Shown: positions 46,849 through 54,208, counted from the stretch's first letter. The stretch: 64,000 nt of DNA from Guillardia theta CCMP2712 (GCF_000315625.1 NW_005434631.1:186001-250000), one strand, 5' to 3'. The notes: generated by a model from the letters alone, not told the origin. Made by a program: numbers and translations.

Positions 46849-48651
46849 CTAAAGTTGCAAGGTGCTTTCCTGCTGCTCAATCTCGGTTCTTCTCTGTTTC
46901 TCATTCCCATAATCTTGACAGAGCTCTTCGTATCGCTGCCTCTTGTGCCCACAAAGCCGCTCCTCCTCCTCTTCCTTTTGCTTTTCAAAGTACAATCCCA
47001 AAGTGTTGGTGCCAACAATCTCCGAAGCTCCTTTAGTGAACAGCCTCGTGATGTATTTCTTTGCCCTGTAGCAGACGGGAGGGAGGGAGGGCTGTGTGCT
47101 CGTATCACTCAAGCACTCGTGCAGGTACTCCAGAGCTGCGGCCTCATCCCTACCATGTCGCTCGTTGTACTTGATCATTTCATCAAGGAAGGCGTCTTTC
47201 AAGAACCTTCCCACGGGAACGAGTTCGACCAAGGTCATGCTGTCGTCGCACTTGTTGATTTCTTGCAGGGCCTTGCGGATGTGTGCTCTACTCATTCTCA
47301 CGCTTGCTGAGTCGGCGCCGTCAAATCCCACGCACACCACATACTTCTCGTGCTTGACAGGGCAGGAGAGCGTCGGCTTCACTATGCAGACCTTTCGGAA
47401 GCATCGCGCGAGGATGTATACTCCCCCTACCGTCCCTCGTCCCAAACTGTCAGCAATCCTGCATATGAACGAGCCTCCCTGCTCTAGCGCCCCCATCCCA
47501 GCCCACATCTGCACCAAGAAGGACGGAAGGCTGGAGGTCTCGTTGGTACCACAAGGGGAGCAGCGGTTGACCGCATCTCCGATGACAATGTTAACTCTGC
47601 TAGTGGCAAGCATCGCTATCAACGGCTCAAGGTCTTCAGCCACGTCAGCTCTTGCCGCTGTCATGCTGTCTTGAGGATACGTGCGCAACAATGAGGAGGA
47701 CGGCAAGGACTGCTGGAGGCTCGGGAGGTCTGGGCTTGCCTTGTCGTTACGGTTCAAGATCCACCCGCACTTGACTCGCTGCCCCAACGACTGTAGCAGG
47801 AAGTCAGAGCAGCCGCCTCTTCCTCCATGGAGATCGAGGAACGAGACTCTGTCACGATTTTGTGTTCCTGTCATTGGCATAGCTCCATCTTTCATGAGAG
47901 ATTGGCTGCAAATGTCAAACACATCTGCAAGCTTCACTCCGGCTCTGCTAACAAAAGGTGTGCACAAAGATGAGTAACATGGGAAGAACTTCTTGATGGT
48001 TGTCGAACTCTTCATATTTGTTATTCCCCGATTTTCCAGGACTTCTTCCAATACATTGTCAGGGCAGAAATTCGAATACTTGTATTCTTTCAGCATTTGG
48101 CCCTTCACAAGCCACTCGTGTTGCGGCTGAAAGGAAATACTGCTGTCCAGCAGGAGTTCTGATCTTTCAATCCAGCGGAGATCCGCAGCTTTCACTCCTC
48201 GCCAAGCTCTCTTATCAACGTTCTCATACTCGCAAGTCAAACCCAATCGATCTCCTTGTAGTCTTGTCGTACATTGGACAGGTACAGTCATACCCTGACC
48301 TCGCTTGCCGAGACCATCTCCCTTGCGGTAGCCGTATTTCTCCAGCTGCTTCCTCGCAAACTCAGATATGACCAGTTTTTCAGGTTGCGTCTCAGGTTGC
48401 GTCTTGGTTCGACCACATTCCTCGTCAGCTGTCTTATTCCGACTGGAACCATTGACGTTCATTCTGGGCACGCGCAGATGAATGACGTTAGGGATTTGAA
48501 TTCTGCATACACCAAACACTAAGAAGAAGACGTGATAGAGTATCACTTGCAGCCAAGAGAAGGTGTCGAGCAATTGTTGGCTGGTACAAACTTGCAATAA
48601 AGATTCATCCTTAGCCAGTAAGGGATCGATGTCTCTGATGATCATGTCGAC
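46849..48651 (-). CDS. CMTR1: G-patch + CMTR1-like RrmJ/FtsJ cap 2'-O-methyltransferase domain (last exon of the predicted fusion gene)
   Basis: G-patch ARKQLEKYGYRKGDGLGKRGQG..RLGL; FVSRAGVKLADV; FLDLHGGRGGCSDF; IGDA; GGSFICRIAD; KPTLSCPVKHEKYVVCVGF. Preceded by a phase-0 acceptor at 48652. Confidence 0.8.
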   Translation of the reverse strand, partial: VDMIIRDIDPLLAKDESLLQVCTSQQLLDTFSWLQVILYHVFFLVFGVCRIQIPNVIHLRVPRMNVNGSSRNKTADEECGRTKTQPETQPEKLVISEFARKQLEKYGYRKGDGLGKRGQGMTVPVQCTTRLQGDRLGLTCEYENVDKRAWRGVKAADLRWIERSELLLDSSISFQPQHEWLVKGQMLKEYKYSNFCPDNVLEEVLENRGITNMKSSTTIKKFFPCYSSLCTPFVSRAGVKLADVFDICSQSLMKDGAMPMTGTQNRDRVSFLDLHGGRGGCSDFLLQSLGQRVKCGWILNRNDKASPDLPSLQQSLPSSSLLRTYPQDSMTAARADVAEDLEPLIAMLATSRVNIVIGDAVNRCSPCGTNETSSLPSFLVQMWAGMGALEQGGSFICRIADSLGRGTVGGVYILARCFRKVCIVKPTLSCPVKHEKYVVCVGFDGADSASVRMSRAHIRKALQEINKCDDSMTLVELVPVGRFLKDAFLDEMIKYNERHGRDEAAALEYLHECLSDTSTQPSLPPVCYRAKKYITRLFTKGASEIVGTNTLGLYFEKQKEEEEERLCGHKRQRYEELCQDYGNEKQRRTEIEQQESTLQL

Positions 48652-48703
48652 CTAAACAAAGCGTGAGCTATCAATCAATGCAGCCACAGCATCATCTGCT
48701 TAC

Positions 48704-51700
48704 CATGCTTGGGTGTTCTTCTAGCATGCTTTCCGTCAGTTCCTGCGTGACTTCTTGTAGGTAACGCCATAGTTCTTGTGTGGTAGGTTGATCCAAGGAT
48801 TTGATAGGCAACTTGCCTGTAAGGATCAGATGTGCGAGTGCGTATCGCTCTTTGAGCTCGGAGGGATCATCTAAGCTCCAGACATGCGTGATGGAAGGGA
48901 GAGAGGTTTTGTCGATGAGGTCAAGGAACGCAGAGCTTTCCTGCTTGATCTCTCGCATGCTGATCTTTTTCTTGCCCGTGTACCTCTCTTCAACAATGAA
49001 GAAGTCATCGTCCGTTTCTCGGAAGATCCACGAGTAAACTCTCTGGCGGAGGGCGAAGGTCAAACCTAAGAAACTTTCGTCCTCCTTCCCCTCCATCGGC
49101 TGAAAGCTGTTTGGTGGCCACCAGAAGTGACGGGCGCAGACCAGACTGAATAACCGATTCTCAAAACGATAGTGCAGAAATGCTTTCAAGAAGTTTTCGA
49201 TCGCATCTTTGCTCTTGCAGTCACCGTCGTTTGAAGATCTTTCTCCGAACACCTTGGCTAGTGGCTCATTGTATGATTGTTTCAGGTTATCAAACAGCAG
49301 CAAGCCCACATTTCCCTTGAACTCCTTTGCAAGAAAGTAAGGCGTGTTCGGCGAGTTCTTGTCATCATGGGCCAAAAGTCCTCGAGCTGAACGAGCCAAA
49401 GCGACTTCATTCACGAGCATGCTCAGTTGTGCGAACGCGAGCTCCAGCTGGTCGAAACGAGGATTCGGATGGTGATCATCTACTGCATGACGACGAATGA
49501 TGCTATGGAAGAACTGACTGTGAGACCTGGGACTTTCCTTCTCCTCTGAGAAGCACGCATGCATGTGTAGCATGTCTCCTGCACCCTGCCAGATCCTGAC
49601 TTGTCGGATAACTTCCTCTCGCAGTGCTTGCAGCCGCCTGTCATATCTACTCTTCACTGACTCCCACGGTACCGTAGGAGTAAAAGCATTTTGAATGAGA
49701 TCTAAGTCGTCCCTTGCCGCGTCGTCGCAAGCCTCGTGCCTCCTCTTGCGATGTTTGAGCATGAAGTAGTCGTTGCCTTTGCGGTTTCCGAGGGCAAACA
49801 GATGATGAACACTTTGAACATTAAACGTTGACTGGATTGCGCTGGGCAAAACGACGAAGCAGTTCCCTCGCGATCAAAGTCGATCATAACTGTCACATCC
49901 ATGAATAAGAAATCTTTATCTCGTGACCAGATCACAACAGCTTTGTGTCTCTGTGCATAGAGCAATGCCACGGTATCAGCATTCTGAAGCTCCTTGGAGC
50001 CTGAATGATACAAGTCTATGCGAGCCGCATCTTGGTTTTCCAGAGCTTGAATCGCTCCTACCATCACTCGTTTCTTCATCATCACATCAGTCTCCGTCCC
50101 TCCTCCATCAAAACAAGCCTTCAGATTCTCTCTCATATGAGCAGCTCTTTCAGTCACGTCGACATCTTGATACAGCTCCTTCATGTACTTGAGCTTGCTG
50201 AAGTTGCTCTCCTGTTGCACTCCTCCGTCGTCAGGCACGCCGTCAAAGATAAAGACGATCCTGGATCGCGGATCGTTGCCGCTTCCTACCTGAAGCTCGG
50301 TCCAGAGCTTTTGAAAGAGACGTAGATAGGCCTTGTAGGATTTGATATGATCCAGCTGAGAGTGAAGTGACTTGAGATTGGACCCGTCGACAACAATCAG
50401 AGGAGCACAAGCTTCTCTTGCAATCCTTTCGTTTATCAGGTGTGACAGTCGATACTTTTCAGCTGGAACTTTCTTGTGTAAAGCCCAGATGGTGTGAGAT
50501 CTGGTGGGGCGGATCCGGTTGATGACAGAAGTGCAAACTGAAGGCAGTATCTTACCTTTGAGCAATCGCTCCTCGAGATCGATCGAGCTGATTCGAAACC
50601 GTCGCATCCACTCGTGTGCGATCAGCTTTCTAGCTAGCTGAATGCCATGAGCTTCCGAGCTTGGGAAAACCTTGAACAAGCGCAAAGTCCTGCTGAGCTC
50701 TGCGATTCTGAGCTCTGCGAAGTATCGCGCGCCCAACAAAAAATATTCCATCCACAGGTTGTCCACGCGACCTTGATCTATCAGGCTCAGCTCGCATCCA
50801 TCTGGGCTCTGAGGCCAGCTCACCCCAGTATATGGCAGAAGGGCCTGCAGGTAGTCCTCGGCAATGCCCTCGAAGTGCTCGCAGACCAGAAACGTCTCGC
50901 TGCTCGTGGACGCGCTCGTGGTCGGTTTGCATACAGAAGTGCGTGCGAAGACACATGAGACAAGATAGACCAGACAAAGACTCGCATGGTCACACAGACT
51001 CGCCATCCTCATCACCAGGTTTCCTCCCTTGCTCAAAGCTCCCATCGCTGTCACGACTTGACAAAATTGCAGTTGCGCATCCATGGCGCAAGCCTGACCT
51101 GATGCTGCTCCACCCATGCACCCATCAGCCGTCACCAGCATAACAGGACCCTTGCTCTTCATCTTCTCCCATGCTCCCTCTATGTTGGGACGCAGCCGCA
51201 TGTCACCGGTATTATCAGCTCCAAAGTACCAGTGCACTACGGTCTCGGTGATCAAAGCGTCATCTCCGGTCTGCGTAAAGAGTTCAAGGAAGCACACGGC
51301 ATGAGAACTAAAGTCACCAGATGTCGCTGGTCGTTTCCTTCGAAGTGAGGGTTTAAGGTACAAGCAACCCAGTCCCATTCAATGTTTTCTTCAGATTGTT
51401 TCCTTAAACCCATAAAGTAATGATTTGTTGCAGAGACAAACGCGCCTCGAGCTTCACATAGATGTAACGAAATGAATTTCTTCGTGCATTGTAAATTGAT
51501 AAGTTGGAATGCTGAAAGTATCTCATACATCTTCGCAAAATCAACGGAGCACAGCTCAGGCGCTATTCTGTCTCGAATCGCGGGTTCTACCGCGGCGGTC
51601 AGAATTGTTCGGGCAGTGAGAGCGTCCCATTCCTAAGGCAGGTCAGCTACAGCACGTGCTCTCTCTACAGCCTACCTGCTTGTCTACGCCTTCCACTTGC

Positions 51701-53486
51701 CGCCTGCTCAGTCGTCAGCAAGGGCTTCAACTTGTTAAAGAGATACTTCTTCTGTTCAAGTTTTCGTAGGACAGGCTGAATATTGTCGATACCGAAGGAG
51801 GAGGATGCGAAAAGAGTAGCAGCAGGAGGCAGGGATATTCCCATCCTCTTGACTTCGAAGCACTTGTCGATGAAAGGTGCCTCATCGTCTTTCTTCTCTC
51901 GCCGCTGATCCATCGACTTCTGGATTAGACCTCCCAACTCGAACATTTTTTCAGCTTCGTCTCTGCTCATCATCAGAAGTTCAGGAGGAGGAATCTGAGC
52001 CTTGGTATCATCGCACTTGGATGGACAGTGACCTCTAGTGCAGTACAGAACTTCATCTGACGGTGATTCCTTGTGAGCTGTTTTCGTTGTATTCGTCGAA
52101 ACATTCAAGTCATGTCTGTATAGTTGCAAGCAATCATTGAAGGTGAAATAATGCCCATCTGGAGAGTTTGTTGAGCAATCTTGGATCATTTCATTCTGTT
52201 TCAAATGATCTGGTTCTGTCCTACGTTTGTAAAGCTTGAGGAACAATATGAGCTCGCACGCCGACATTTCTTTCAGTGCGGCACTCGTCTCCGTTTGCAT
52301 CGATCCGACTTTGTTTTGAACCCTCCCCATCCATTTTGACTGAGTGTGGATTGAAAACGGAAATTGGTTGCCATCTTCAGTGTACAAGAAATCAATGCCA
52401 GGAGTATAAGGTGATAAATGCGCTTTCTTCACGTATGCCTTGCAAAATAGACAAACTTTGCAGGAAGTTTGGACCTTCTAAAATCTCTTCATCCAGCTCG
52501 CATTCCAGCAATCTGCGCCTCTGCCGTTGAGAAATGACCAGGCTCAAATCTCTTTCTACGAGTGCCTCCACCCCTTCCCTATAATGTATTCCCACTGCAA
52601 TATGCAGCGCTGTCTTGCCTTGCCCGTCCTTCAAGTCTACTCGGACCTACAGCACAAGTATCTCCGGTCAGCTCCTCTCACCTCCTACTCCTCCTGGACT
52701 TACCTTGTCGCTCTCCAGCAGAGCCCTCACGCACGCCGTTTGCCGGTGATAGACGGCGAGATGCAGCGGCGTATCGCCTGACTCTGTTTGAACGTTGGGG
52801 CTGGCACCTAGGGCGAGCAGCCTCCTGCAGCATTGCTCCTTGCCTTTCTCGCAAGCTCGATGAAGAAGAGACCTTTCCTTGTATCGGGGCAAGAGCTCGT
52901 CGATCCTCGCGACGTTAAGGAGCCGCTGGAGCTCGTCCGCGTCGTCCCTCATGAGGACCTCATTCTCCGATATCATTGTAATAGCTGTCTGTGCGTTCTT
53001 CTGTCGTGCGTAGTCCAGCACAAGTCTCCCCTGCCCGTCCTGGATGTCCAGACATGCACCTCCCTCCATGAGTGCCTCCACCCCCTCCCAATAGTCTCCT
53101 CCCGCTGCAATGTGCAGCGCTGTCTTGCCTTGCCCGTCCTTCAAGTCTACTCGGACCTACAGCACAAGTATCTCCGGTCAGCTCCTCTCACCTCTTACTC
53201 CTCCTGGACTTACCTTGTCGCTCTCCAGCAGAGCCCTCACGCACGCCGTTTGCCGGTGATAGACGGCGAGATGCAGCGGTGTTTCTCGCGAACTTGATAT
53301 TGCCTGTACGTTGGGGCTGGCGCCCAGGGCGAGCAGCCTCCTGCAGCATTGCTCCTTGCCTTTCTCGCAAGCTCGATGAAGAAGAGACCTTTCCTTGTAT
53401 CGGGGCAAGAGCTCGTCGATCCTCGCGACGTTAAGGAGCCGCTGGAGCTCGTCCGCGTCGTCCCTCATGAGGACCTCGTCCTGCAT
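48704..53486 (-). CDS. CMTR2: Ankyrin repeats + CMTR2-like cap 2'-O-methyltransferase + FEN1/Asteroid-type PIN-like nuclease (5' part of the predicted fusion gene)
   Basis: Ankyrin: SLLHRAC, TPLHLAV, GKTALHIA. CMTR2-like: ELCSVDFAKMYEIL, SLHLCEARGAFVSATNHY, TLNPHFEGN, DDALI, WYFGADNTGD, VTADG, KPTTS..SE. Nuclease-like: VVDGSN, FIFDGV, NAD, SRDKDF, GNDY. The start is uncertain. Confidence 0.78.
52561..53478. repeat. Near-identical direct duplication of a ~400-bp ankyrin exon/intron unit (52561-52961 and 53071-53478; offset 510-516 bp)
   Basis: Long identical stretches including the intron, e.g. GCAGCGCTGTCTTGCCTTGCCCGTCCTTCAAGTCTACTCGGACCTACAGCACAAG in both copies. Confidence 0.95.
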
Positions 53487-54208
53487 GATGTGCTCAGTGA
53501 GGACAAGGCGAACCGCAAGTATTGGCGTGTGTAGTCAGGTACGCGCTCCTTGCGGGAATCCCTTGGCTGCCTTCCTCGGTGAGCTCGGAACTGAGAACAA
53601 CAGACGGGATTGAAACGGTTTTCAACGTACGGTACCCTTTAAGGTACCCCCTGATTCCCCTGCTGATACCCCCAATACACTACCCTCACCCGAGTGACCA
53701 GCTGAATGACCAGGCACTGAAGTTGATGAACAGGGCATGGGAAGGGGACGGAAAGACCCCGCGACTGTCCTCGCTCTCAGACCTGCCCACTCCTCTGCCT
53801 AAGAAGAAACTGAAAGCCTAACTAACTTCCGTGACTAAGATCATAAGAAATGAGAAGGGCATACACTTCTCAACTCCAACTTCGACAGGAAGCGTTAGTT
53901 TTCTTACTCGCCCGGATCAGATACCTTGAAGGCTCAGCTTCTCACCGTCACGCTATACCCCCCTTCAAGAAGGTTTTCTCCTCAGTCCGATCGAGGACGC
54001 CTCCGAGTCCGATCGTCAACTACCACCGTTGGGTTTGGCACAGGGCTGCGGTCCGGGCACCGGGGCCCGGCAGTGACGGTACGGTCGGTCCGGGTGGTTC
54101 CCGGCGGCGCCGGAGCCTTCAGCCTGTGAGCGGCCCGGGCCCGGGTAACTAAGCCGTGAGGAGGCGGGCTTGTAAAGTGAAGTCAGTTTGATGGACGACT
54201 GCGGCCCT

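Follow-up and report, generated by a model that had tools for sequence, protein, structure and literature searches.

The stretch analysed here, referred to below as the window, comprises 64,000 nucleotides of the Guillardia theta CCMP2712 genome (GCF_000315625.1 NW_005434631.1:186001-250000) and corresponds to positions 186001-250000 of contig 43 in the own-genome assembly of 87.1 Mb and 669 contigs. On its minus strand, at approximately 46849-53534, lies a gene made up of long open frames separated by very short introns, including three frames of 558, 385 and 598 codons with no stop inside. From its sequence, the predicted product of this gene is a CMTR2-family protein and not a fusion of CMTR2 with CMTR1. 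As one gene, it probably runs from ankyrin repeats through a first Rossmann-fold methyltransferase (RFM) domain, RFM1, an inserted module that is possibly a FAM120/Asteroid-like nuclease, and a G-patch, to a second RFM domain, RFM2, with the stop codon placed at 46849..46851 by the list of open reading frames (ORFs). Searches were run exon by exon, the exons not being merged into one spliced protein; all exon junctions of the gene can be joined in frame, which places the two RFM domains in one predicted polypeptide. Exact-sequence look-up found none of the window ORFs in the protein collection.

All positions within the gene are given in window coordinates and lie on the minus strand. The first half of RFM1, in exon 2 (51318..51632), gives a weak Pfam FtsJ match of 18 bits, below cut-off, and in alignments with nine relatives it keeps the first Lys of the K-D-K-E tetrad and has Arg for the Pro of motif I. 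It is followed by a 47-nt, phase 0 GT-AG intron read directly from the sequence (51271..51317), with an intron at the equivalent place in the genomic contig (L042) of a relative, P0151. The second half, in exon 3 (50872..51210; Pfam FtsJ E 1.9e-11), keeps the Asp and Glu of the tetrad and has Arg for its second Lys when aligned to EP424R and CMTR1. The inserted module (48704..50460), in which the possible nuclease domain is followed by a helical region, occupies the space between RFM1 and the G-patch, and a further 52-nt, phase 0 GT-AG intron, also read from the sequence (48652..48703), joins the insert in frame to the last exon (exon 5). This exon holds a conserved 21-residue hydrophobic segment (48499..48561), found by own-genome search to be common to a paralogue on contig 64, then the G-patch (48247..48360; Pfam PF01585 E 6.3e-8, above cut-off), then RFM2 (47323..47955; Pfam FtsJ E 1.1e-12), in which the first Lys, Asp and Glu are kept and Arg stands both in motif I and at the second Lys.

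The motif I and second-Lys motifs lie at 51464-51438 and 51027-51004 in RFM1 and at 47835-47809 and 47478-47455 in RFM2, with Arg codons CGA (51447-51449) and AGG (51007-51009) in RFM1 and AGA (47818-47820) and AGG (47458-47460) in RFM2. A preliminary description of the window had reported these four motifs, with Arg at the motif I Pro and at the second Lys of both domains and with the first Lys, Asp and Glu of the tetrad retained. All four motifs were confirmed at their places on the minus strand, alignments to CMTR1, EP424R and the family agree on the three retained residues, and alignment to human CMTR1 places Arg, not Lys, at the second-Lys site of both domains. Because the motifs lie inside well-conserved domains, as the FtsJ and G-patch E values above attest, they are not chance matches. 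In 27 aligned diverse canonical CMTR1 proteins, both the motif I Pro and the second Lys are invariant.

A HMMER search with the G-patch and second domain against 1.84 billion representatives yielded 855 hits, the best non-trivial ones being not CMTR1 but proteins in which a single ORF encodes a CMTR2-type domain, a G-patch and a second FtsJ domain, in that order (P0002, P0009, P0010, P0011 and P0016), and a further search yielded P0151, a genomic contig with the order FtsJ, G-patch, FtsJ likewise in one ORF. Word-index protein searches with the last exon gave no match, a 277-aa relative lying outside their length window. Trees built from 117 domains (FastTree) and from 60 domains (IQ-TREE, mixture model) contained three groups, namely first domains (support 100 in the Shimodaira-Hasegawa-like approximate likelihood ratio test, SH-aLRT), second domains (90) and canonical CMTR1 (79), with the two window domains in the first two. 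RFM1 lies in the CMTR2 catalytic-domain clade with support of 99-100 in both trees, and RFM2 falls among the second domains of two-domain proteins (SH-aLRT 90), the place of a non-catalytic C-terminal RFM. CMTR2 has been described as needing two RFMs in the same chain, a catalytic one at the N-terminus and a non-catalytic one at the C-terminus (PMC3941023; PMC3113572), and the N-terminal K-D-K triad as conserved in all members but Plasmodium (PMC3113572); RFM1 departs from this triad, reading K-D-R. The C-terminal half has the CMTR1 arrangement of a G-patch followed by a CMTR1-fold RFM, but it has neither the invariant Pro nor the second Lys, and the trees place it apart from canonical CMTR1. 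The likeness of RFM2 to CMTR1 is therefore real at the level of the fold, yet membership of CMTR1 fails because the tree group and the invariant residues differ, and the initial identification of the second domain as CMTR1 gives way to a place among the non-catalytic second RFM domains of the CMTR2 family. That this domain might be the sole CMTR1 of the alga is ruled out by a canonical CMTR1 on contig 29.

Human CMTR2 (hMTr2, FTSJD1, the cap2 2'-O-methyltransferase) likewise has two RFM domains per chain, each in the same clade as its counterpart here, and in both proteins the C-terminal domain is without the catalytic Lys. The Guillardia protein differs in its N-terminal domain, which reads K-D-R-E and has Arg for the motif I Pro, in its far less degenerate second domain, which follows a G-patch and has both a glycine-rich loop and the first Lys, Asp and Glu of the tetrad, and in its approximately 590-residue module between the domains and its N-terminal ankyrin repeats. 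The nearest relative of both domains (support 97-99) is P0151 (ENA ERZ930071), whose source is probably another cryptophyte; it shares the intron position and both RFM2 Arg residues, but lacks the inserted module and keeps Pro and Lys in its first domain. Among solved structures, human CMTR1 (4n48, 8p4e) is the best match of RFM2 by sequence and by fold, and a G-patch precedes the RFM in both, whereas in the Guillardia protein the Pro and second Lys are Arg, most of the cap-contacting residues appear by pairwise alignment not to be kept, and neither a guanylyltransferase-like nor a WW domain is present.

Judged by comparison with its relatives, the Arg pair of RFM2 is an old, inherited and conserved state. 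In alignment with human CMTR1 (8p4e, 4n48; phmmer E 1.5e-24), RFM2 keeps K239, D364 and E441 and has Arg opposite K404, with a further Arg opposite the Pro of the glycine-rich S-adenosylmethionine (SAM) loop. At the second-Lys site, Arg leads among 55 second domains with 28 occurrences, ahead of Lys (17), Gln (4), Glu (2) and four residues seen once each, and the consensus of 24 second domains has Arg there too. Both Arg residues are also present in the second domain of P0151, at 41% identity over 477 aa. The motif I Arg is encoded by AGA here, by CGA in P0151 and by CGC in P0002, three different codons that indicate that Arg has been maintained through synonymous change. RFM2 is sister to the P0151 second domain (97-99) within a subclade of ten (98), and it keeps nearly all of the residues conserved across that subclade. 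Its AlphaFold model has a predicted local distance difference test (pLDDT) score of 78.8 and finds its best Foldseek match in 4n48 (E 1.9e-23; template modelling (TM) score 0.69-0.74). Unlike the second domain in published descriptions of CMTR2, RFM2 has a recognisable glycine-rich loop and recognisable other tetrad residues; many second domains are without any recognisable SAM loop. Gene conversion between RFM1 and RFM2 as the source of the shared Arg residues is ruled out, the surrounding codons being unrelated.

The Arg pair of RFM1, by contrast with the old RFM2 pair, is on comparative grounds recent and specific to this copy, having arisen after a duplication in the Guillardia lineage. 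At the second-Lys site, all 29 other first domains have Lys and RFM1 alone has Arg, and at the motif I site Pro is found in 23 of 23 other first domains, as is the first Lys of the tetrad. This first Lys is kept, and the Pro replaced by Arg, when RFM1 is aligned with ten or with 24 CMTR2-type first domains, and alignment with CMTR1 and with EP424R of African swine fever virus (ASFV) places Arg at the second Lys. The sister of RFM1 (support 100) belongs to the 54%-identical paralogue on contig 64 (~323900-327500, plus strand), which has the same insert and hydrophobic segment and retains Pro and Lys, but ends approximately 110 residues past that segment, without a G-patch and without a second RFM. 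Single-base differences separate the two copies at both sites, CCA to CGA in motif I and AAG to AGG at the second Lys. Since Lys and Pro are universal in the other first domains and the paralogue keeps both, the RFM1 pair is taken to be recent.

In a relative-rate test of the two copies with P0151 as outgroup, 22 unique changes were counted in this copy and 24 in the contig-64 paralogue (p 0.77), which rules out faster overall evolution of this copy and confines the excess of change to family-invariant sites. Conservation reaches at least 90% across 26 other first domains in 32 columns, of which 12 are changed in this copy and 6 in the paralogue; because the paralogue's 6 differences are all common to both copies, the lineage-specific losses number six in this copy and none in the paralogue. 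Both Guillardia paralogues are without a Pro, a Gln and a Glu that are invariant in the 26 other CMTR2-type first domains (window 50900-51130, minus strand; L019:1600-1800). The loop that held the lost residues corresponds by its position to the m7G cap-contacting loop of CMTR1 and is retained by a further CMTR2-type gene on contig 71; the loss in both paralogues hints at an altered substrate before the duplication.

The preliminary description took the identical changes in the two domains as a sign that selection had altered both in parallel and had possibly made a double cap reader of the protein. Arg does stand at the same two positions in both domains, the motif I Arg of RFM2 has been maintained across species despite synonymous codon change, and fold and reading frame are conserved. 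The ages of the two pairs nevertheless differ greatly, the RFM2 pair being common to P0151 and the RFM1 pair being unique and later than the duplication, so that they are not parallel events of one episode, and second domains have Arg at the Lys site by default. In addition, the residues that contact m7G and the triphosphate in 4n48 mostly appear not to be kept in RFM2, where pairwise alignment at ~25% identity, with uncertain alignment of the loops, shows only R235 kept among the cap contacts, Arg at K203, and differences at D207, R218, E373, N374, Q376 and R436. A double cap reader produced by parallel selection is thus quite unlikely. The possibility, raised at the same time, that Arg might be common at this site in protist relatives is borne out in part, by 28 of 55 second domains, though not by enzymes known to be active. 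The proposal that the two domains may be non-methylating has gained strength through a viral analogue discussed below, but for RFM2 the non-catalytic state is the usual one of the family.

On balance, we regard the gene product as probably a non-methylating CMTR2-family paralogue kept for binding or scaffolding, a reading built on sequence comparison. After the duplication in the Guillardia lineage, RFM1 would have lost the catalytic Lys, the motif I Pro and several other family-invariant residues, while its fold, its other SAM-loop motifs and its reading frame would have been retained. The protein would then no longer methylate caps and may survive as an RNA-, cap- or SAM-binding scaffold for the insert or for the Lys-bearing sister protein. 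RFM2 would serve as an accessory non-catalytic domain, as does its counterpart in human CMTR2, which is required for substrate binding, and cap methylation would be performed by the canonical CMTR1 on contig 29 and by the Lys-bearing CMTR2-type genes on contigs 64 and 71.

The effect of the Lys change can be gauged by analogy with the L methyltransferase of vesicular stomatitis virus (VSV), in which K1795R leaves the protein soluble and RNA synthesis intact while both methylations are lost (PMC11381362). In this RFM cap 2'-O-methyltransferase, Lys is replaced by Arg at the same tetrad position, although the mutant is an engineered form of a viral enzyme that also carries out N7 methylation and is only distantly related; by this analogy, the change in RFM1 probably kills catalysis. 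If RFM1 were instead still active with altered chemistry or substrate, Arg would have to replace the second Lys in its role, and the Arg of motif I would have to be harmless. The latter has a parallel in NS5 of West Nile virus (a flavivirus), an active enzyme of this fold class with Arg at the Pro place of the glycine-rich motif (PMC2670515), where the equivalence is drawn at the level of the motif; by analogy, Pro to Arg need not block SAM binding. An active RFM1 would also agree with the intact first Lys, Asp, Glu and remaining SAM-loop motifs, with an overall rate no faster than that of the Lys-bearing paralogue, and with the earlier substrate change hinted at by the loss of the Pro, Gln and Glu of the cap loop in both paralogues. 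The VSV L substitution, which removes both methylations from a protein that stays soluble, speaks against it, as do six further lineage-specific changes at invariant sites and the distribution of Arg at the second-Lys site, where it occurs in 0 of 29 other first domains and, for canonical CMTR1, in 0 of 27 aligned proteins and 0 of 31 in the tree. We therefore consider continued activity of RFM1 unlikely.

A second alternative is that the gene is a decaying pseudogene, with the Arg codons and a change of frame near 49857 as early lesions. DNA alignment with contig 64 shows, at 49832..49896, a single 1-nt gap inside conserved coding sequence where the paralogue reads straight through 66 nt, and this is explained either by a 65-nt GT-AG intron or by the loss, in comparison with the paralogue, of 1 nt near 49857. 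The gap and the excess loss at invariant sites would fit decay, but the intron would remove the frame change, and the frames of 558, 385 and 598 codons have stayed stop-free despite 46% protein divergence from the paralogue, with equal amino-acid change in both paralogues and with nearly all subclade-conserved residues kept in RFM2. An environmental contig (L027, 985 bp), 96.4% identical over a stretch running from the end of exon 4 through the intron into the start of the last exon, gave a ratio of nonsynonymous to synonymous substitution rates (dN/dS) of 0.45 over 269 codons, which is only moderately low, and its two indels relative to the window are both in frame. Taken together, the open frames, the equal rates, the dN/dS ratio and the six invariant-site losses suggest that the gene is maintained, with relaxed constraint at catalytic-type sites, and decay is very unlikely. 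Two further observations concern the introns of this region. At the site of the frame change, the paralogue has GT and AG at matching places, with a spacing of 66 nt that keeps the frame, so that either both copies may have an intron here or neither. The 52-nt intron at 48652-48703 is identical in L027 (52/52) while the flanking exons differ by ~4%, which is unexpected for an intron in what is a small sample.

Several points weigh against a non-methylating protein kept for binding. The dN/dS ratio covers only the linker, the G-patch and the start of RFM2, and a metagenome scan with exon 3 found no close relative and thus no first-domain orthologue in which conservation of the Arg residues could be seen. 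The remaining SAM-binding motifs of RFM1 are intact, as would be expected of an enzyme and of a SAM-binding pseudoenzyme alike. Arg can act as the base in other 2'-O-methyltransferase classes (SPOUT), so that residual or altered activity is possible. The frame change near 49857 could reflect the 65-nt intron, a mistake in the assembly or a genuine frameshift, and the insert may be a FAM120/Asteroid/XPG-like nuclease domain, which is a lead from the protein language model only.

The insert, of approximately 590 residues, is absent from all relatives outside Guillardia and is 53-55% identical to that of the contig-64 paralogue. By protein-language-model features (score 0.95; 192 of 256 shared) it lies closest to FAM120A, XPG_I and Asteroid clusters, and nine of its ten best neighbours share a family or clan. 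FAM120 and Asteroid proteins, which carry XPG/FEN1-like PIN-type nuclease domains, are thus the nearest clusters, although the insert, which matched nothing in Pfam at E up to 10 and no sequence in the PDB, is a candidate member only; its AlphaFold model, made from a 3-row alignment, has a pLDDT of 41 and is too poor for use. The hydrophobic segment at 48499-48561 was recognised by an own-genome match of 51% identity over residues 2-64 that peaks in the segment, and could be a membrane or buried helix. Its counterpart in the paralogue (contig 64, ~327090-327150) is the best-conserved stretch between the two copies in the region, with ~24 of 32 residues around it matching. The DNA of the segment is intron-like (GT, pyrimidine run, AG), though its length is not divisible by three.

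At the 5' end of the gene, the exon preceding RFM1 (51701..52432, within the ORF 51665-52432) is homologous to the N-terminal regions of the contig-64 paralogue and of P0002. No in-phase GT-AG intron was found between exon 1 and exon 2; a probable GC-AG intron (51633-51700) restores the frame by eye, with a GCAAGT donor at 51700. Upstream lie the ankyrin-repeat exons (52395..53534, minus strand), recognised as open frames with ankyrin-like repeats rather than from a Pfam scan. They consist of near-identical tandem units in which exon and intron boundaries recur three times, a pattern that suggests recent internal duplication. In P0002, an ankyrin ORF lies immediately upstream of the CSD-FtsJ-G-patch-FtsJ ORF.

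The genome was also found to encode separate canonical cap methyltransferases, a check that the preliminary description had called for. A stand-alone CMTR1 lies on the plus strand of contig 29 (~350900-354600; L051), with a G-patch, the motif I Pro and a full K-D-K-E tetrad; it is divided into many exons of ~30-60 codons, was missed by single-sequence (six-frame) genome searches and was detected only with a 27-row CMTR1 profile. Lys-bearing CMTR2-type domains are encoded on contigs 64 and 71, the latter a first domain with canonical Lys, Asp, Lys and Glu and the conserved loop, and a search for a second RFM domain at these two loci found none. Given the canonical CMTR1 and the Lys-bearing CMTR2-type domains, the alga would not depend on the window gene for cap methylation. 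Three VP39-like (Pfam PARP_regulatory) 2'-O-methyltransferase ORFs were seen as well, on contig 241 (35089-35775; L039), contig 47 (571674-572303) and contig 216 (2078-2707). The contig-241 copy is part of an ORF at least 845 residues long, and its alignment to vaccinia VP39 shows the tetrad intact at all four residues; the ORFs on contigs 47 and 216 have identical scores.

A joint reading, which is speculative and unlikely to be correct, would have the two paralogues split one enzyme between them, contig 64 supplying a live catalytic domain and the window gene a second domain and a dead RFM1, so that they would function only as a heteromer joined through the shared insert; or the dead domains would bring the nuclease-like insert to capped RNA. 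As its corollary, the second domain of CMTR2 would derive from a CMTR1-like enzyme with a G-patch, and might be active in relatives with a full tetrad. In environmental P0002 (L028), P0003, P0005, P0006, P0007 and P0013, the CMTR2-type second RFM keeps the G-patch, the glycine-rich loop and the full K-D-K-E tetrad. Such P0002-type second domains may therefore possibly be an active second methyltransferase, whereas published descriptions of CMTR2 give a second domain without any such motif.

By itself, the window gene, as a diverged spare copy within a known enzyme family, changes little. It does offer a natural Lys to Arg cap 2'-O-methyltransferase domain that is still folded and open-framed, and its sister gene has the complementary defect, so that the pair of paralogues forms a clean test case for how two-domain methyltransferases become pseudoenzymes. 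The "inactive" second domain of CMTR2 has, in many protists, retained a G-patch and a CMTR1-like active site, a point that goes unmentioned in the CMTR2 literature cited here. These second domains bear on the origin of the cap2 enzyme and on a question already raised in print, namely whether cap1 and cap2 may both be made by some CMTR2 orthologues (PMC3113572). If the second domain is indeed active in them, the P0002-type relatives would be single-chain cap1 and cap2 enzymes.

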